DNA of 64,000 bases, taken from Paramoeba atlantica. Taxonomy: Eukaryota > Protista > Discosea. Both the position numbers and the translations under genes were made by a program. The notes beneath the pieces were generated by a model. That model saw only the letters and a list, made by a program, of their open reading frames with translations. It did not search any database and was not told the DNA's origin. Each line of letters opens with the position of its first letter. The first letter of the stretch is position 1. Below, in pieces: positions 2,654-62,223 of this stretch. The DNA lies in assembly GCA_977017575.1 (NCBI GenBank), contig CDRNVI010000015.1, forward strand, positions 434,001-498,000. The letters run 5' to 3'.

Positions 2654-2860
2654 CCCTCATGCTATTCCTCAGCATATAGGGGTACAAACTGCGTTATCAA
2701 ATTCAAAAAATGAACCTGAATATTGAATTTTAGACCTTCAACCGGCTTTGAAAAACAAACCGCTGTTTCGCGGTGTTTCGCGCTGTTTCACAAACTTAAC
2801 CCGCAGCCCCTCACATGTATCAACATCAAAGTACGTCCTTATGTCATAAGGACTCATAAT

Positions 2861-3553
2861 TTAGGCTCTTCGTTAAACGCGGCGGTTGTTTTCAACTTAG
2901 AAGTCACTCATGCTGCGCGCTTCGCGTTGAAAACTACCACCGCGTTTAACGAAGAGCTTAAAAAAGAAAAATCTCCGAAAGATCATGAATAATCTCCTTT
3001 TTCGGGGGTAAATGCTCGATTTTTCGGCAACAATTGCGAAATTTTACACCGAATTTGGGCTGTTTTGGATGACTTACCAGTAGGGGCAGGAGTCGAATCT
3101 GTCGACAAAAACGTCGTAGAATCGTAGCTGAGGTCCGAAACTCCTAAAACACGTTTTAGGAGTCGATTTTGGAAAAATAAGATTTTTACTTTTTTTTGGG
3201 TCTAAAAAAAGAATTTTTTTGGTCACCCCAAAAATTTCGGAAATTTTGACCTTGTCGGACCCCTCCCGCGCGTACCAGGGGGGGGGGGGTGGAAAATTAT
3301 CGCCGCGGTATACTCTACCACTTCCCTACGCTCGATTTTGAAAAGCAAAAAATTCGAAAAAAAAATCGCGACGTATGCCCCTCCCCCCTGGATCCCCCAT
3401 TTTTTCGAATTTTTTTTCTGTTTTGGACCACCGGGGCCCCCTTTTATATTTTTTTCTTCTATTATATTACTGTGTTCCTCTTTATTTTTTCACTGTTTTT
3501 GATCACTTTTTTTTCAATAATCGAGGGTAGAGAGGTAGTTATAGAACCACCGC
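2861..3553 (+). mobile_element. Hairpin-ended interspersed element, copy A
   Basis: 5' long hairpin (TTAGGCTCTTCGTTAAACGC...GCGTTTAACGAAGAGCTTAA), conserved 3' ~200 bp ending ACCACCGC, AAT at 2858-2860 and 3554-3556. Confidence 0.8.
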
Positions 3554-3881: not shown

Positions 3882-3883
3882 TA

Positions 3884-4472
3884 ATAGAAGAAAAAATATA
3901 AAAAGGGGCTCCGGTGGTCCAAAACTGGAAAAACAAAATTGAAAAAAATGGGGGATTTAGGGGGGGGGGTCCAGGGGGGCATACGTCGCGAAATTTTTTT
4001 TCGATTTTTTTACTTTTCGAAATCGAGCGCAGGGAAGTGGTAGAGTAGGCCGCGGCGATAATTTTCCATCCCCCCCTGGTACGCGCAGGAGGGGTCCAAC
4101 AAGGTCAAAATTTCCGAAATTTTGGGGGTGACCCAAAAAAAAGTAAAAATATTCTTTTTCCAAAATCGACTCCTAAAACGCGTTTTAAGAGTTTTAGACC
4201 TCAGCTACCATTCTGCGACATTTTTTTCGCCAGATTCGCCTCCTACGTCTATTGGTAAGGCATCAAAAACGGCCCAAATCTGGGGTAAATTTTCGCAATT
4301 TTCGCCTAAAAATCGAGCTGTTTCACCCAAAAAAAATAGTTATTCAAGATCCTTTTTTGGCGATTTTTCTTTTTTAGGCTCTTCGTTAAACGCGGTGGTA
4401 GTTTTCAACGCGAAGCGCACAGCATGAGTGAGTTCTAAGTTGAAAACAACCGCCGCGTTAAACGAAGAGCCT
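3884..4472 (-). mobile_element. Hairpin-ended interspersed element, copy B (3'-truncated)
   Basis: Reverse complement aligns along its length with copy A; long hairpin at ~4365-4472; truncated at the MITE. Confidence 0.8.
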
Positions 4473-14898: not shown

Positions 14899-15110
14899 TA
14901 AGGAGTCTTTTCTCCACTCGCCCCGTGGTCACACCTTCTTCACTCGTATTCAGTGAGAGGCATATTCTAAGGAGTCTGTGCTCCACGCGCTCCGTGGCGC
15001 ATCTTCTTCACTCGTATTCAGTGAGAGGCATATTCTAAGGAGTCTGTGCTCCACGCGCTCCGTGGCGCACCTTCTTCACTCGTATTCACTGAGAGGCATA
15101 TTCTAATAAG
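14899..15110. repeat. 68-bp tandem repeat, 3 copies
   Basis: TAAGGAGTC unit starts at 14899, 14968 and 15036, with a partial start at 15104; units are adjacent with no unique spacers. Confidence 0.92.
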
Positions 15111-15386
15111 TCTCCGCTGTACACGCCCGGTATAAATTCAACGTATAGAAAAAAAGGAAGATGTATCGCGCATGCGCTGCGTCCCCAGGGCTCACGTCCG
15201 ACCTTTGCCCGTTGTAGGAAGTGCGCGTGACTGCCCGGAGTCGGTACTAGTCAAGCATTACTTCCCTGGAACTGCTATCTTATCGATAGTACGCCGACCT
15301 TCATTAGACAAAAATAGAGAAAAAAATAGAGAGAAAAAACAGAGACAGAAAAGGAACCGGTCGTATTGAAATTTTATGAAAAAATA

Positions 15387-15493: not shown

Positions 15494-16130
15494 TACCAGA
15501 ATTTAAGGTAATATACCCCAATTCATGCCATATTGTTACAGTTTTGGACGTATGAAGTGCGCTAAAGAGGAAATAATGTCTGTTTTGAAGAGATCTCGGC
15601 AGGGGCTCCCGCGGAAAAATATTGCAAGCAACTGAAATATCGCATTGTGGAATCTTGTGTCGACCTAAAAAGTCAATTTTGACTGAAATTGTGGAACCTT
15701 CTGTCGGCCTAAAAAGTCAGTTTTGACGGAAACTTTTGTTGGAGAAGACGGAAAGGATGGGTCAGAAGAAGAGAATATTAGTAATATTCTAATATTATAT
15801 TACTACAACTTCTACAATCTATTAAGATTAGACGGTCAGCGCCAGTACTACCGGAAAGATGGCTGTTTCAGAGAAGACCACAAGGAGGTCCCGACCATTC
15901 TTTCTCATGCTGAGTGTGTCCGGCATCAGTGAAATTTACTTAGTAATTTACTTATCAAATTACTTAGTAATTTGATTATAAAAATAATCAAATCTTTCTT
16001 AAATACAGGTCTTACTATCATACCAAAGTAGATACTATAATCTATCCAATTATCTTTATCTCACGAAGAAAATACCAAAAGGGATTGTATCCTTTTCCCC
16101 TTTTACATAATGCCCATGCACTGTGCTAAT

Positions 16131-17015
16131 TTCTTTTTTAGGCTCTTCGTTAAACGCGGTGGTTGCTTTCAACTTAGAAGTCACTCATGCTGCGCGCTTC
16201 GCGTTGAAAACTACCGCCGCGTTTAACGAAGAGCCTAAAAAAGAAAATTTAGCCTGGAAAACGGAAAGATTATAGCCAAAAATAGCCGAATTTCGGGTAA
16301 AAATGGGGTGATTTTCGCGTATTTTTGCTCTCAGAGCACTAAATCCGACATTTGCGCGTGGGAAATCACTCGCAGGCATGAATGAAAGCCTACCGAACGT
16401 ATTGGGTAGAGAATGCGACTCCAACCATACCATTCTTTCGACACAAAAATGCCCCTTTAGGTCCGAAAAATACTTTTTCACCTTTTTTAGTCAAAAATGG
16501 GTCATTTTGGGGGGCGCACCACAGTTCGAAGAAGTGATACCTTGCGAAAACAACTGCGTAGAAAGCTAGTGTAGGTCCCAAACTATCAAAATACAATAGG
16601 GGAAACGATTTTGGAAAAATATTTTTTTTGTCATTTTTTTCGCCAAGTTGAATTTTTTTTCAAAAATTTTTTTCCGAAAAAATCCGAACTTGGCGGACCC
16701 GTCCTGCGGATACGCGGGGGGGTCACCCCCGGGTAGGGGGGTGGAAAATGCGCGCCAAGACCCCGGCTACCCTTTCTGCGGTTTTTTTTCGAAAACTAAT
16801 TTTTTCGAAAAAATTTGCTCGACCATGCCCCCCCCTGGACCCCCCCCATGGACCCCCCATTTTTTTCAAAAAAAATTTTCAGTTTTGGACCACCGGAGCC
16901 CCCTTTTATATTTTTTTCTTCTATTATATTACTGTGTTCCTCTTTATATTTTCACTGTTTTTGTTCACATTTTTTTCAATAATCGAGTGTAGAGCGGTAG
17001 TTTTACAACCACCGC
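16131..17015 (+). mobile_element. Hairpin-ended interspersed element, copy C (full length, 885 bp)
   Basis: 43-bp arms 16131-16173 and 16203-16245 (40/43 complementary); 3' hairpin GCGGTAGTTTTACAACCACCGC at 16994-17015; AAT at both flanks. Confidence 0.88.
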
Positions 17016-17169
17016 AATGTTAAGAAGTTAATAATTCACCCGATTTTCACCATTTGCTACACACTCTTGCATCCCTCTTTAAAAGGAGTCAACTACTGTT
17101 TGAGCCAGCTCACGCGCTTTTGGACTCCTCAAAAATTCTTCAGATACTACCTGGATAATCTCGGATTGC

Positions 17170-17761
17170 GTATTCGGTCACTTTTTATTCTTCTCCTGTA
17201 TTAAAAAAGACCAAAACTTTTCAAAGGGAGAAAGGTCAGGAGAGTCAGCCAGCCATTTTGGGAGAATAGTTCCATCGGAACTTTTGTAGGTGCGCAAACT
17301 TTGAGTACCTAATTCATCCCTCGTCCTCCACCACATCATTGTCTTCTTCGCCGTATGTGGCGGTGCTCCGCCATCCTGAAAAATCATGTCAGGATGAGAT
17401 GCATGGTAAGGAATCCACTGTTTCATCAAGATGTCCTTTCGGTAGTAGTAATTTCCTAATTTGCGACCACGAGGGGGATCTCACGACTTTCACCGGGATA
17501 CAAAGAACGTATGGCCTCGTGTGCGCAAAACTCTGTAAAGTTGTTACACCAATGCCGAGGGATTTTACCTTGAATGTCTATGCCCCCCCAGAGCATGACT
17601 TTAGTCGGATGATGTACCCGCGCATCAGTTATAAGGAGTTTCTTTAAAAAGAGTCCTCCTGTGAGTTGTTGCTCTTTCAACAAAGCCTGACGAAACAGCA
17701 CACAATGTTCTTCTAGAAAGTTGTTCATCCTTGTATGCATAAGACAAATTGGATGCTGCAT
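17170..17761 (-). pseudogene. Tc1/mariner transposase fragment
   Basis: HPTKVMLWGGI, IFQDGGAPPHTAK and WLADSPDLSPFEKFW in two frames. Confidence 0.85.
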
Positions 17762-17891: not shown

Positions 17892-19034
17892 ATGTCCAAG
17901 CGAGCTTTGTTTGGTCTTGGATTTATTACTGGTGGTACATTCGCATCACTGGGAACACTAATGATATTTGAATGGCGCTTAGACAAGGAAAATAATACTC
18001 TACAGACTGATCCGAATGATCTAGTGTCCAAGGTCAACGAAAAAAACTACTTTGCTAATGACGTTTATGAGCATTTGGGATTACCTATCGAAGTGGATTC
18101 TTATCAAACGCGCTCGTACATCTCTGGATTCAGTCCTAGACTTCGAACTCCTGAGTGGGTTTTCGAATACTTTTGCTCCAATGAAACGGCAGAGCGACTG
18201 TCCGAAGGGAAACGCAGTAATTCAAAATTTTTTGAGGAAAGAAGCATTCCTCTAAACTTCCGTTCTACCAATGCTGATTATGCATGGGGATCGGAGCTGG
18301 GGTTGAGCCGCGGGCACCTAGCCGCAGCTCAGTTTCATAAAGAATCGCAGTCAGCAATTGACGACACTTTTAATCTCTCGTTTAATATTGTTCCTCAACA
18401 AATGACTATGAACGGCTGTGACTGGTTTCGCCTGGAACAAATGGTGAAGCGTATGTCAAAGATCTATAATGAAACATGGGTAATCACAGGACCTGCTTTT
18501 GTGCCAACTAAAGGAAAGCACCCTGGAGTGTGGGAAATGACATATTCGCTTGTAGGGGAAAGACGAGTCGCCGTTCCGACGCATCTTTACAAGATTATTC
18601 TGGGGAAATCTTCGGAAGGGGAATATCATATGGCATCATTTCTTATGCCCAACGAACCTTTACCCGTGGAATATCCTTTAACGCATTATCAAGTCCCTCT
18701 TGAACAAATTGAATCTCACACAGGATTGCGCTTCTTTCCTAATTTGCGGAGGTCCTCTCCTCGCTTGCCTAACATGTGCAATCACCAGACCTGTGAAGGT
18801 ACATATGGAAGCTTCAGTGCGCGTTATCGTTTGCTTGCTCGTATGCAAACTGCTTCCTCTATAGAAACCTTAGAATCTCTTTGGAAACAAGCAATGGAAA
18901 AACGATACACCGATACGTACATGAAATCTCAATACAACATATTGAAAGAAAGATGGAAAGCTACGCATGTACTGCAAAGCAAGACTCACGTGAAATTTGA
19001 CAAGCTTTTAAATGAAAATAAAAAGCATGAATAA
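17892..19034 (+). CDS. ENDOG: Mitochondrial endonuclease G (DNA/RNA non-specific nuclease)
   Basis: RTPEWVFE, LSRGHLAAA (SRGH variant as in trypanosomatid EndoG), NIVPQ, WVITGP, VAVPTHLYKI; N-terminal membrane segment. Confidence 0.92.
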   Translation: MSKRALFGLGFITGGTFASLGTLMIFEWRLDKENNTLQTDPNDLVSKVNEKNYFANDVYEHLGLPIEVDSYQTRSYISGFSPRLRTPEWVFEYFCSNETAERLSEGKRSNSKFFEERSIPLNFRSTNADYAWGSELGLSRGHLAAAQFHKESQSAIDDTFNLSFNIVPQQMTMNGCDWFRLEQMVKRMSKIYNETWVITGPAFVPTKGKHPGVWEMTYSLVGERRVAVPTHLYKIILGKSSEGEYHMASFLMPNEPLPVEYPLTHYQVPLEQIESHTGLRFFPNLRRSSPRLPNMCNHQTCEGTYGSFSARYRLLARMQTASSIETLESLWKQAMEKRYTDTYMKSQYNILKERWKATHVLQSKTHVKFDKLLNENKKHE

Positions 19035-32992: not shown

Positions 32993-33254
32993 TTCATGGG
33001 TCGGTTTGTTTGTTTTTCACACCGAATGGTCTTGGTATTTTAGTTAAGTAGTTTTCGTATCGCTGGACACTCTTATTCTTTCTGTTTATTTCTCGGCAAA
33101 TAAGTTGACTAATTTTCTGTAGACAAAACATGAATCGAGAAATGCCATATCAATTTCTAATTTTTTATTCGATTTGTGAAGGTATCACACAGCATTAATT
33201 TCTCGACATACATATCCTATTGTTACAATTCGATACAATATGTATGTATAGAAT

Positions 33255-33741
33255 TTTTCTTTTTTTGTCTCTTCGTTAAAAGCAGTGGTTTTTTTCAACT
33301 TATAAGTCACTTCGCATTGAAAACTACCTCCGCATTTAATGAAGAGACGAAAACAGATAAATTGTCCAGGCAAGAGAAAGAAACCGCAGGGATTTGTGCC
33401 AAAAAGTAGTCACTTTTTCGCTGAAACTCGGGTCATTTTTCTGTATTTCGCGCGACCATGCCCCCCTTGCTCGGAAAATTGCTCGACCATGCCCCCTCTG
33501 GCCTCCCTAGACCCCATTTTTTCGAATAGTTTTTTTTCAATTCTCAACTCACCCTGCTGGATCCACCCTACCCCGGACTCCATAAAGAAGGGAGAGGCAG
33601 AGGTTGTAAACAACCCCCGCAATAACGCGTCATTTATGAGCCTAGGTCATAAATTATACTTTGTTTCGTTTTATTTTTTAACTGATTTTGTTCATTTTTC
33701 TTTAATAATCGAGGGTAAAGTGGTAGTTATACAACCACCGC
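33255..33741 (+). mobile_element. Hairpin-ended element, copy E (internally deleted, diverged)
   Basis: Degenerate long hairpin at 33255-33355 and 3' end AATAATCGAGGGTAAAGTGGTAGTTATACAACCACCGC. Confidence 0.75.
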
Positions 33742-47433: not shown

Positions 47434-47491
47434 GAAACTATACCTCTGAGGTTTTTCAGAGGCTATTACATTGTAAAGAAATTTAGGATTA

Positions 47492-48225
47492 ATGCCATCG
47501 AAAATGTACCCCAAAATCGATTTTTTTGATTTTTTTATAGTTTTCATTCTATCATTCATTTCTTCACCCCAGATTCATATTCTGGTGCCTTTGCAACGTT
47601 TTTTCACCCATTTTTACATGCTTTCGCTTACCTAGTTTATCGTCAATACCTAAGTTCCGACGTCAAAAAAGTTTCTTTTTTCGGAATTTCTTCGGTTTCG
47701 CTCACTCTTACTTCGTTCTTAAGAACGAAGTACTGGTGTTTGCAGCAATTGCTTCAGTCTTCCCTCTGGGCAAGTGCATGTACTCGGTCTTCCGCCCTAT
47801 GTTTCTCCTCGCACCATGTACTGACATATCCCTTCCTGTATATCCGTCTGAAACGTCGCTATCGTGCTTTTGAAAGAGAATAGAAGTACATTGTGCGATG
47901 AGAAACTGATCGACCATACGCAATCTACATAGAGGGAAAGCACGACTAAGTGCACTTGCCCTGATGGAAGGCGAGGCAATCACTGCAAGCACCAGTACTT
48001 CATTCTTATGAACGAAGTAAGAGTGAACGAACCCGATGAAATTCCAAAAAAAATAGGCTTTTTTAACACCGGATGTTATGCTTTGAGGATAAACTTGGTA
48101 AGAAGAAGTACGTAAAAATCAGTGAAAAAACGTTGCAAGGGCACCCCAATATGAATCTGGGGTGAAGAATTGAAAACTATAAAAAACTTAAAAAAATCGA
48201 TTTTAGGGTACATTTTCGATGGCAT
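47492..48225. mobile_element. Foldback/MITE with ~260-bp inverted arms
   Basis: Arms 47492-~47757 and ~47972-48225, beginning ATGCCATCGAAAATGTACCC. Confidence 0.8.
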
Positions 48226-48418
48226 CGAGCCGAATTTTATATTCCTAATAAATGGACATAACAATTTCTTATAAAACAAAATTTAATAGCTTTTTGAGAC
48301 ACAATAGTAAAGTTTGTTGTATCAATTTGAAACGTTTTATAGATTATTGATGAAAACGTGTTCGTACTACGCGTACATTAATAGCAAGGGGTGTACAAAA
48401 ATATACTAGTTGTGTCGC

Positions 48419-58097: not shown

Positions 58098-58993
58098 GCG
58101 GTGGTTGTAAAACTACCGCTCTACACTCGATTATTGAAAAAAAAGTGAACAAAAACAGTGAAAATATAAAGGGGAACACAGTAATATAATAGAAGAAAAA
58201 AATATAAAAGGGGGCTCCGGTGGACCAAAACTGAAAAAAAAAATTGATAAAAATGGGGGGTCCATGGGGGGGTCCAGGGCGGGGGGTCCAGGGGGTCATG
58301 GTCGAGCAAATTTTTTCGAAAAAATTAGTTTTCGAAAAAAAACCGCAGAAAGGGTAGCCGGGGTCTCGGCGCGCATTTTCCACCCCCCTACCCGGGGGTG
58401 ACCCCCCCGCGTATCCGCAGGACGGGTCCGCCAAGTTCGGATTTTTTCGGAAATTTTTTTTTGAAAAAAATTTCAACTTGGCGAAAAAAATGACAAAAAA
58501 AATATTTTTCCAAAATCGTTTCCCCTATTGTATTTTGATAGTTTGGGACCTACACTAGCTTTCTCCGCAGTTGTTTTCGCAAGGTATCACTTCTTCGAAC
58601 CGTGGTGCGCCCCTCAAAATGACCCATGTTTGACTAAAAAAGGTGAAAAAGTATTTTTCGGACCTAAAGGGGCATTTTTGTGTCGAAAGAATGGTATGGT
58701 TGGAGTCGCATTCTCTACCCAATACGTTCGGTAGGCTTTGATTCATGCCTACGAGTGATTTCCCACGCGCAAATGTCGGATTTAGTGCTCTGACAGCAAA
58801 AATACGCGAAAATCACCCCATTTTTACCCGAAATTCGGCTATTTTTGGCTATAATCTTTCCGTTTTCCAGGCTAAATTTTCTTTTTTAGGCTCTTCGTTA
58901 AACGCGGCGGTAGTTTTCAACGCGAAGCGCGCAGCATGAGTGACTTCAAAGTTGAAAACAACCACCGCGTTTAACGAAGAGCCTAAAAAAGAA
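58098..58993 (-). mobile_element. Hairpin-ended element, copy F (full length, near-identical to copy C)
   Basis: Reverse complement matches 16131-17015 almost throughout; ATT (AAT on minus) at 58095-58097 and 58994-58996. Confidence 0.88.
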
Positions 58994-60193: not shown

Positions 60194-60317
60194 TAGTACT
60201 ATTAGTACTTTACTCGTATTAATCTTATTCTTTCTACTATTTGTTGAAAATAATGTAAGCTGCTACGTATTTGTACGGGCAATTTTTTTAACTAAAGTAT
60301 TGTCTCATTTTGCGAAC

Positions 60318-61169
60318 ATGCCTACGCACGTGTTGTATGCACTTTTCAATGGTACGGAAGCGGAATCCCACCAAAGGCAGCCCCCTTTTCATGGTTTTGA
60401 CTCCGTCACCGATCTAGTTCGACGGCGCTATGAAGAGCAGTGTCGTGTTGTCGCAGTCATGGTTCGTCTTGGTTGCCCATTTCTCATGTGCGCCGAACAA
60501 AAAATTAAGAAACGTACGGAATATGAAGATGAATTTTCATGGGAGCTTCTTGCCCAAGATATGCGCGTTTCCTTTCATGAAGCGTGGAATACTTACCAAA
60601 GAAATATTGCTAAAATATCTCTTCAGACGTTGATGGCTAGCGCACTTTTGTTACATTCAGGGGAGTATTCACACGCTGTGGTTTATCAATGGGATACCAG
60701 GCCTCGGTTAGTGAATTACTCCTTAACCCCCCTTCTTCAACGCATGGGATCGATCGGTAAAAAGAAGTGGTTTGGTCCCACTCCCCGAGAAGCTGATGTA
60801 GAATACTTGGAGTATTCTTTTGAAGGTACACGAAGTGCGCTGGTCGCTTTCGAGGACTCTGTGATGCGCAATGTGTTGTATGTCTTCTCGGATATTTTGG
60901 TAGAGTGTTTCGCAGTTTTGCCATTATGTGTGAATACGAAGTCAAAAGAAGGTCCGGATGCGCGTTTAGACCCGAAAAGAGCTCAACAGGTTTTTCTCAC
61001 TAGGTCATGCGCAAATGGAGTGAAGCTTTTTGGTGCTGCGCTCGGCGCCGCGGCTGGTACTCATCTCAACGCAGGTCATGGGGAATGCTGGGGAGAGGCC
61101 TTGGGAGGCATGCTTGCTCAACTCTTTCTGTGGAAAACAAAGAACACTAAACCATATGCAGCTAACTGA
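60318..61169 (+). CDS. Hypothetical protein with glycine-rich hydrophobic C-terminus
   Basis: Long ORF on the coding strand; GAALGAAAG...WGEALGG. Confidence 0.7.
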   Translation: MPTHVLYALFNGTEAESHQRQPPFHGFDSVTDLVRRRYEEQCRVVAVMVRLGCPFLMCAEQKIKKRTEYEDEFSWELLAQDMRVSFHEAWNTYQRNIAKISLQTLMASALLLHSGEYSHAVVYQWDTRPRLVNYSLTPLLQRMGSIGKKKWFGPTPREADVEYLEYSFEGTRSALVAFEDSVMRNVLYVFSDILVECFAVLPLCVNTKSKEGPDARLDPKRAQQVFLTRSCANGVKLFGAALGAAAGTHLNAGHGECWGEALGGMLAQLFLWKTKNTKPYAAN

Positions 61170-61850: not shown

Positions 61851-62223
61851 TAGAGGAAGAAATGGAACCCAGGATGAAAGGGGCAAGGGATATACGTAGT
61901 AACAGGCGTGGCAGGTTCCCATTGAAAAGAAATGGCATCTCCCCGCACGAATTTCGTCTCCGAGCTAGCAAGCGCAAAGGCTGTTCTCGTGCGGGGAGAT
62001 ACCATTTCTTTTCAGTGGGAATCTGCCACGCCTGTTGCTTCGTATCTCCCTCGCCCCTTTCAGCCTCGGTTATGATTATTTACATGTATTATTATTCTAT
62101 ATCTACGAGAATTCCGAGTAGACATTACTAGTATTCCAAAGTTCTAATCTTGAATGCAAAGATAAATGTTGTTCTCTTCGGTCTAAAATGATGTTATGAC
62201 AGCGCACTTCGATTTCCGAATAC

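Follow-up and report, generated by a model that had tools for sequence, protein, structure and literature searches.

Non-coding repeats with unequal hairpin ends as probable passengers of a Helitron2-type transposon

What moves a DNA element that encodes nothing and carries a different hairpin at each end? This question is raised by a repeat at positions 16131-17015 of contig CDRNVI010000015.1, positions 434,001 to 498,000 (Paramoeba atlantica assembly GCA_977017575.1), a stretch of 64,000 nucleotides that we call the window. The original prediction, made from the letters of the window, described six copies (A to F) of a candidate new mobile family and proposed a recently active element with single-stranded hairpins or a circular form, whose enzyme is encoded elsewhere or is an adjacent tyrosine recombinase (YR). 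We put at about 0.9 the probability that the repeat is a non-autonomous Helitron2-type element (HLE2 without endonuclease), moved in trans by the RepHel protein of autonomous copies of about 12-13 kb.

The enzyme was found by a six-frame search of the 45.7-Mb assembly, which gave 29 matches to Helitron_like_N in open frames of up to 2,975 amino acids (aa). Pieces of the RepHel open reading frame (ORF) match DUF6570 and Helitron_like_N (2.7e-21) and the PIF1 helicase (2.2e-25) in Pfam, and both catalytic motifs are intact: ALHFHSVLW for HUH and YLIKYMSK for the two tyrosines (YxxxY). This is the make-up of the Helitron superfamily, i.e. a Rep domain with HUH and two tyrosines fused to a PIF1-like helicase of superfamily 1, and both termini are common to the short and the long copies. 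The 2,975-aa ORF was scanned against Pfam in its N-terminal, middle and C-terminal portions and gave no apurinic/apyrimidinic (AP) endonuclease domain (Exo_endo_phos) at E <= 0.01, and the Rep region had no match among PDB sequences at E <= 0.001.

One autonomous copy with an apparently intact ORF lies at C43:151115-163972 (12,858 bp, with the 2,975-aa RepHel); it was pieced together from overlapping loci, with 398 bp within the ORF unread and the open frame taken from the six-frame search. It starts as ...gtataattaATT|GCGGTGGTTGTAAAACTACCGC, that is ...taATT|GCGGTGGTTGTAAAACTACCGC, where it shares the 22-nt hairpin of the short element, and it ends in a complete 116-nt hairpin followed by unique DNA. 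Contig C52 holds a second full autonomous copy, bounded by the same pair of ends and set in other flanks. No fewer than ten autonomous-type 3' regions (on C41, C43, C47, C109, C20, C52, C21, C34, C82 and C83) stop at the long hairpin, past which their sequences diverge. Over its first ~800 bp the autonomous copy matches the short element at 95-96% identity, and in every RepHel locus read pieces of the element adjoin the ORF, which always runs antisense to the orientation first given to the repeat. That orientation was thus reversed: the supposed T-rich start is the Helitron 3' end, and the extreme "CAACCACCGC 3' end" is the 5' end. The rest of that proposal fared better. Longer copies enclosing the enzyme exist, the enzyme is encoded elsewhere, and the comparison with Helitron2 and Helentrons was the right one, as RepHel-bearing copies share both termini with the short element; its non-autonomous nature, recent activity, hairpin ends of single-stranded DNA type and asymmetric inverted repeats are also supported.

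How do the two ends relate to each other? On the RepHel strand the layout is 5'-(ATT|)GCGGTGGTTG-TAAA-ACTACCGC...body...116-nt palindrome ending ...CAACCACCGC-GTTTAACGAAGAGCCTAAAAAAGAA(AATT)-3', and the palindrome itself reads TTTCTTTTTTAGGCTCTTCGTTAAACGCGGCGGTAGTTTTCAAC-loop-GTTGAAAGCAACCACCGCGTTTAACGAAGAGCCTAAAAAAGAA(AATT)-3'. The 5' asymmetric terminal inverted repeat (ATIR), GCGGTGGTTG, stands at position 1 (2-4 if T, TT or ATT is counted as part of the element) and within a hairpin, and the palindrome's second arm contains the 3' ATIR. On the strand first read, GCGGTGGTTG at 16156-16165 is the exact 10-nt reverse complement of the terminal CAACCACCGC at 17006-17015, as had been noticed. 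The two ATIRs are complementary at 10/10 positions, a better match than either makes with its partner inside its own hairpin. Inverted, the 22-nt hairpin repeats the inner stem of the long hairpin, which upholds the description of the short hairpin as the joined inner parts of the two long arms. Folded as DNA, the long hairpin (16131-16246) reaches -47 kcal/mol (z = -11.6) and the short one (16994-17015) -6 to -8 kcal/mol (z about -4; -4.2 at -8 kcal/mol). The A.A mismatch of the long hairpin and the 3' ATIR are conserved among copies, and the C.A position is free (C, T or A). The idea that the hairpin keeps specific mismatches was thus set aside as only partly true. Between its ends the element has no ORF above 114 aa, in line with the original claim, and its three longest ORFs have no Pfam match.

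Should the complete palindrome, 3' ATIR included, serve as the terminator, an autonomous copy is expected to have a single start-like end and a single stop-like one. A scan of the C43 copy for end motifs gave one 5' hairpin and one complete long hairpin; two internal element-like units hold the first hairpin arm only and have no 5' hairpin, and past the RRM ORF, as seen in the copies on C41 and C82, comes a third remnant with only the first arm. Hence, every autonomous copy has a single end that resembles an initiator and a single one that resembles a terminator. The RRM ORF is the second of the autonomous copy, placed after RepHel, and encodes ~259 aa with an RRM domain at E = 2.7e-06 (L046:1593-2372; C43:161864-162643). 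Plant Helitrons often carry genes for RPA-like single-strand binding proteins, with which the position of this ORF may be compared. A tandem satellite of ~112 bp is 85-87% identical to part of the RRM-ORF region downstream of RepHel; it occurs at C99:10826-12775, C56:359270-360213, C83:248982-249478 and C38:114308-114804 and, judging from this similarity, looks Helitron-derived. The Rep matches also form several groups by score and coordinates (C88:18391, C99:17394, C86:55017, C40:767289, C102:21400, C3:10571, C12:128329 and C83:3065; C67:55933 and C100:51435), so that one or more RepHel lineages other than the element-linked one are probably present in the genome.

The collection of copies genome-wide, which the original prediction had called for, put the six copies in proportion. 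The 22-nt end motif has 893 matches in the genome with at most two mismatches, 378 of them exact, against 0 for the reversed pattern, which excludes chance. The 885-bp query gave at least 169 scored matches among 1,602 candidates, and copy C has ~45 full-length relatives at 94-99% identity across the genome. The divergence of 31 full copies from their consensus is 0.8-3.0%, with a mean of 1.9%. The family is young and has roughly 900 copies; "six-copy" holds for the window and falls far short for the genome. Many full copies are preceded by 5'-end fragments of 38 or 158 nt, and some stand in head-to-tail arrays (e.g. on C32, C21 and C73) with one ATT at the joints, which read ...GAAAATT|GCGG..., sometimes with added ATT-rich bases. 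The 38-nt mini-units consist of the 5' hairpin and ~16 nt ending in ATT, repeated directly before full copies (C21:738845-738904, C2:1104707-1104766 and C34:19699-19761; also L048 and L053). The internal CGATTATT|G may be a second cleavage or insertion site.

Tandem arrays and a very stable hairpin could also belong to something immobile, a dispersed satellite or a family of structured non-coding RNA genes spread by recombination. Yet, the dispersed copies have base-exact boundaries in unrelated flanks, their ends are common with a transposase-encoding element, and an Rfam scan of the whole window matched no family (a tRNA scan found none either). The existence of paralogous empty sites refutes this explanation, to which we give next to no credence.

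Two such sites, independent of each other, reveal what an insertion leaves behind. The first, L023:1214-1455, reads GTGTT-AAT-ACATT, and its filled counterpart L029 reads GTGTT-AAT-element-AAT-ACATT. The second concerns copy C, whose host is a ~1.3-kb repeat (15510-16130 and 17016-17701) with at least six paralogs at 85-94% identity (C36, C4, C50 twice, C62 and C41): the empty C36 and C4 read ...gtgctAAT|GTTAAAAAG..., and copy C in the window reads ...gtgctAAT-element-AATGTTAAGAAG.... At both sites the net gain is the element and three bases, one AAT having become two. Other candidate sites were discarded. In the nested self-insertion L006/L030 the joint of the host copy contains 15 additional AT-rich bases, and in the insertions within 18-bp and 19-bp minisatellites (L043 and L021) the phase is ambiguous.

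Is the pair of AATs then a target-site duplication? AAT had been reported on both flanks, and it is there for A, C and F; its constancy, though, is much lower on the hairpin side than on the other. ATT precedes 354 of the 378 exact 5' hairpins (93.7%), and of 33 full copies 31 have AAT on that side. On the hairpin side, 9 of 33 young copies carry a triplet other than AAT (about 70% kept), and about a quarter of the distinct hairpins have a ragged 3' tip (e.g. ...CCTAAAA|TTATC and ...CCTAAA|TGTTTA). Since the two triplets are so unequally conserved (94% versus about 70%), the pair is probably no true target-site duplication. The AAT on the hairpin side carries the palindrome on and is probably the final part of the element itself. 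A T is the last base of the 5' flank in all 33 copies and, in about two thirds of them, also the first base of the 3' flank. Such flanks would allow a cut at AT^T, and the registers ATT^, AT^T and ^ATT all fit their statistics. We infer that Rep cuts next to ATT at both ends, one ATT being the target's and the other the element's, and that termination at the 3' end is imprecise.

The same junctions bear on two other kinds of element. One is a circle-forming YR element (Crypton/DIRS-like, or moved by an adjacent YR) with AAT as the short crossover core, one such triplet being carried by the circle and one by the target. It would account for the single AAT of empty sites, the AAT on both sides of filled ones and the single AAT at tandem joints. 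Yet, a conservative site-specific crossover would not leave a ragged end or a hairpin-side triplet other than AAT in 9 of 33 young copies, which also tells against the initial view that AAT is a short direct repeat at the termini, as in YR elements. The long copies enclose RepHel instead of a recombinase, and the ORFs scanned beside the window copies hold no integrase domain (no genome-wide search for YRs was run). As for the adjacent YR itself, the neighbouring ORFs gave a DNA/RNA non-specific endonuclease and a weak RNase-H-like match. A YR element is thus very unlikely, and we hold in equally low regard a deletion derivative of a DDE transposon with a 3-bp target-site duplication, similar to miniature inverted-repeat transposable elements (MITEs) and PIF/Harbinger-like. 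The latter would fit the three-base repeat at both flanks and the AT-rich targets. Against it, nothing at the opposite end is an inverted match of the outermost 25 nt of the hairpin end, and the inverted repeat is placed asymmetrically, at the very tip of one end but 25-29 nt in from the tip of the other. PIF/Harbinger elements use TWA and not AAT, about a quarter of young copies have two different triplets, and the long copies found carry RepHel and not a DDE enzyme.

A single-strand element like IS200/IS605, with a Y1 enzyme of the HUH class, subterminal hairpins and insertion 3' of a short target motif, and possibly associated with TnpB or Fanzor, would fit the hairpin at each end, the apparent lack of a true target-site duplication, the constant ATT 5' of one end with the same motif at the other, and a cleavage logic that resembles that of IS608. 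In the bacterial IS608, the wider IS200/IS605 group and IS91, a HUH nuclease acts on hairpin-marked ends and inserts 3' of a short motif without duplication, with one-ended or read-through products. But their enzymes are Y1, or Y2 without a fused helicase, and the present element is not a member. Its ends sit on RepHel-encoding copies, and the 45.7 Mb hold just two Y1_Tnp matches, neither with pieces of the element (Fanzor and TnpB were not searched for). Such an origin is even less probable than the two preceding ones. The two Y1 loci, C95:26313-26675 (E = 2e-41) and C126:14596-14949 (E = 2e-32), read as L037 and L038, may lie on bacterial contigs within the assembly.

How would a Helitron2-type element of this structure move? 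The HUH/two-tyrosine Rep domain would nick beside ATT at the 5' hairpin, and the PIF1-like helicase would peel the nicked strand off in the 5' to 3' direction. The full 3' palindrome, whose second arm holds the complement of the 5' ATIR, would act as the stop signal. The freed strand, probably circularised, would then be placed at an ATT within AT-rich DNA, with no true duplication of the target site; the joint of the circle would read ...AAAAAAGAAAATT|GCGGTGGTTG.... Insertion of this kind would turn an empty ATT into ATT-element-ATT. We infer the nick positions, the displaced strand and the circular intermediate, of which there are indirect hints: the arrays with one ATT per joint and a single palindrome extended by its own complement. 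In this copy (C52:312687-313643; L043:2688-3643) the 3' palindrome gains 27 nt complementary to the copy's own internal flank, the extension carries a copy-specific G/C change, and the whole folds at -67.6 kcal/mol. This suggests snap-back and self-primed synthesis on a single strand, although it is an anecdote and not a proof. One might go further and speculate that the family is the first active Helitron lineage documented in Kinetoplastea and has an unusual end logic, in which one imperfect stem, GCGGTGGTTG/ACTACCGC, serves both ends in inverted orientation, Rep cuts 3' of ATT at either end, much as IS608 relies on a short motif beside its hairpins, and the 116-nt palindrome primes its own synthesis in a manner similar to rolling hairpins. 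A self-priming palindrome, if true, would explain both the ragged 3' tips and the 27-nt extension. We regard this elaboration as doubtful.

Naturally, several observations weigh against the assignment to a Helitron2-type element. Both empty sites formally also fit a 3-bp duplication of AAT. The 3' ATIR of the Helitron2 elements described by Bao & Jurka (2013, PMC3627910) lies upstream of the 3' hairpin, whereas here it is inside the second arm, closer to the arrangement of FoHeli1 and FoHeli2. The internal element-like units make the autonomous copy a composite, to whose present form nested insertions contributed. The terminal structure is the sole ground on which the element may be placed in the Helitron2 clade. 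Finally, we saw no circle junction, excision footprint or presence/absence polymorphism.

The window holds all six copies that had been claimed (Table 1). Copies C and F, described as nearly identical, share 96% identity across 885-897 bp. Copies A and B have in common with them only the hairpin of ~115 nt (94-96%) and ~177 nt at the Helitron 5' end (89-92%), so the account of conserved ends with differing middles stands. The other end of copy D was looked for and not found. Copy E lies between two genes of one same-strand gene cluster.

Table 1. Copies of the element in the window and terminal features of copy C. Positions are those of the window; "reader" is the orientation of the original prediction.
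Feature	Position	Orientation	Description
Copy A	2860-3553	reader + / Helitron sense -	Separate non-autonomous subfamily; middle unrelated to C/F
Copy B	3882-4472	reader - / Helitron sense +	Subfamily of A, inverted relative to A; without the Helitron 5' hairpin end
Copy C	16131-17015	reader + / Helitron sense -	Full length, 885 bp; probable non-autonomous Helitron2-type element
Copy D	19809 to ~20140	reader + / Helitron sense -	Old and diverged; hairpin 88% identical
Copy E	33252-33741	reader + / Helitron sense -	Diverged derivative of 490 bp; degenerate hairpin, recognisable 5' hairpin end
Copy F	58098-58993	reader - / Helitron sense +	Full length; 96% identical to C
5' terminal hairpin, 22 nt	16994-17015	-	GCGGTGGTTG-TAAA-ACTACCGC; 5' ATIR GCGGTGGTTG at 17006-17015
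3' terminal palindrome (hairpin), 116 nt	16131-16246	-	3' ATIR CAACCACCGC at 16156-16165, 25-29 nt from the 3' end
AAT at the junction (reads ATT on the Helitron strand)	17016-17018	-	Directly 5' of the element; target or cleavage-site triplet
Second AAT triplet	16128-16130	-	Hairpin (Helitron 3') side; extends the palindrome (AATTTTC / GAAAATT)

Most of the window has a close double. Positions 15549-60492 are collinear with C53:691517-736637 over more than 40 kb at 99-100% identity, with the same Helitron copies; this stretch of C53 represents either a haplotig, a segmental duplication of very recent date or a duplicate made by the assembly. It carries copies C, D, E and F too, and thus offers no presence/absence polymorphism, and it has one extra 158-nt 5'-end fragment beside its copy F. 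Outside the element, between copies C and D, lies a gene for a DNA/RNA non-specific endonuclease (PF01223, 4.9e-39) at 17892-19034. About 1 kb from copy C, positions 14932-15135 hold three tandem 68-nt units (99% and 79% identical). Nested inverted-repeat arms of 68-127 nt at 47479-48238 and a hairpin at 61866-62071, with 85-nt arms and a 36-nt loop, may be other foldback or MITE-like elements.

In which kind of organism does this family live? The window has clusters of intron-less ORFs on the same strand, and at 60300-61169 it has a gene of the pATOM36 family (E = 3.4e-27). As this family is a kinetoplastid marker, the host is likely, from its gene content, kinetoplastid-like and related to trypanosomes, a group in which, according to the literature, Helitrons are missing. 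A survey of 57 trypanosomatids reports no class II elements and cites only Merlin, in Bodo and Perkinsela (PMC12278014). A genome paper on diplonemids mentions Helitron-like ORFs, and our full-text literature searches found no report of Helitrons in bodonids. With ~900 young passenger copies, two or more full-length autonomous copies and a 2,975-aa RepHel that is apparently intact, the present family widens the known host range of Helitrons. A DNA transposon that is likely still active in a relative of trypanosomes is also a possible genetic tool or marker of genome dynamics, and its clean ends, with one complete terminator per autonomous copy and crippled internal copies, make it a convenient system to study end recognition of Helitron2 type.

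How does the family compare with the known Helitrons? Those of the Helitron1 type start with TC, end with CTRR, have one short hairpin 10-12 nt from the 3' end and insert at A^T. None of this is found here: the ends are (ATT)GCGG... and ...AAAAAAGAA(AATT), with hairpins at both. The AP-endonuclease domain that marks the transposase of Helentrons is also absent from the RepHel parts that we scanned. The anatomy of Helitron2 comes much closer, with a 5' ATIR 0-3 nt from the end and in a hairpin, and a 3' ATIR that is subterminal by 20-30 nt (PMC3627910, PMC5148889). The reference is Helitron-1_CRe of Chlamydomonas with its non-autonomous partners Helitron-1N1_CRe as well as Helitron-1N2_CRe (Bao & Jurka 2013, PMC3627910). 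Like it, the present family has a terminal 5' ATIR in a hairpin, a subterminal 3' ATIR, a 3' hairpin, no 5'-TC/CTRR-3' and probably no real target-site duplication, together with a RepHel without endonuclease and non-autonomous partners of ~650-900 bp that lie a few per cent from their consensus. It differs by its 116-nt palindrome, by a first base G (or T or ATT, depending on the cleavage register) that follows ATT and not TTTT, and by its likely kinetoplastid-like host. HLE2 elements are known to insert between T and T (PMC11417382).

FoHeli1 and FoHeli2 of Fusarium oxysporum (Chellapan et al. 2016, PMC5148889) also have hairpins at both termini. Their 3' inverted repeat, too, is itself in a hairpin, 38-51 bp from the 3' end. 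They insert after an AT-rich motif ending in T (TNAT^T), and their joined ends suggest a circle (PMC5148889). Yet, the terminal sequences differ, the 3' tip of FoHeli is invariant and not ragged as in our copies, and the hairpin described here is several times longer. The DINE-1/HINE elements, non-autonomous Helentrons of Drosophila, are reported (Thomas et al. 2014, PMC4067079) to be likewise very abundant, short, non-coding passengers of an HLE2-type element; their inverted repeats are subterminal, they have a stem-loop at the 3' end and a variable 3' tip, and they insert in tandem. Their autonomous partner is reported to carry an AP-endonuclease domain, of which the scanned parts of the present RepHel showed no trace. 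Hence, the element is of a kind already known, and the suggestion of a new mobile family holds for a new family of Helitrons and not for a new kind of element. Peculiar to it, at the level of the family, are the terminal sequences, the 116-nt palindrome that houses the 3' ATIR and the accessory ORF with the RRM domain.

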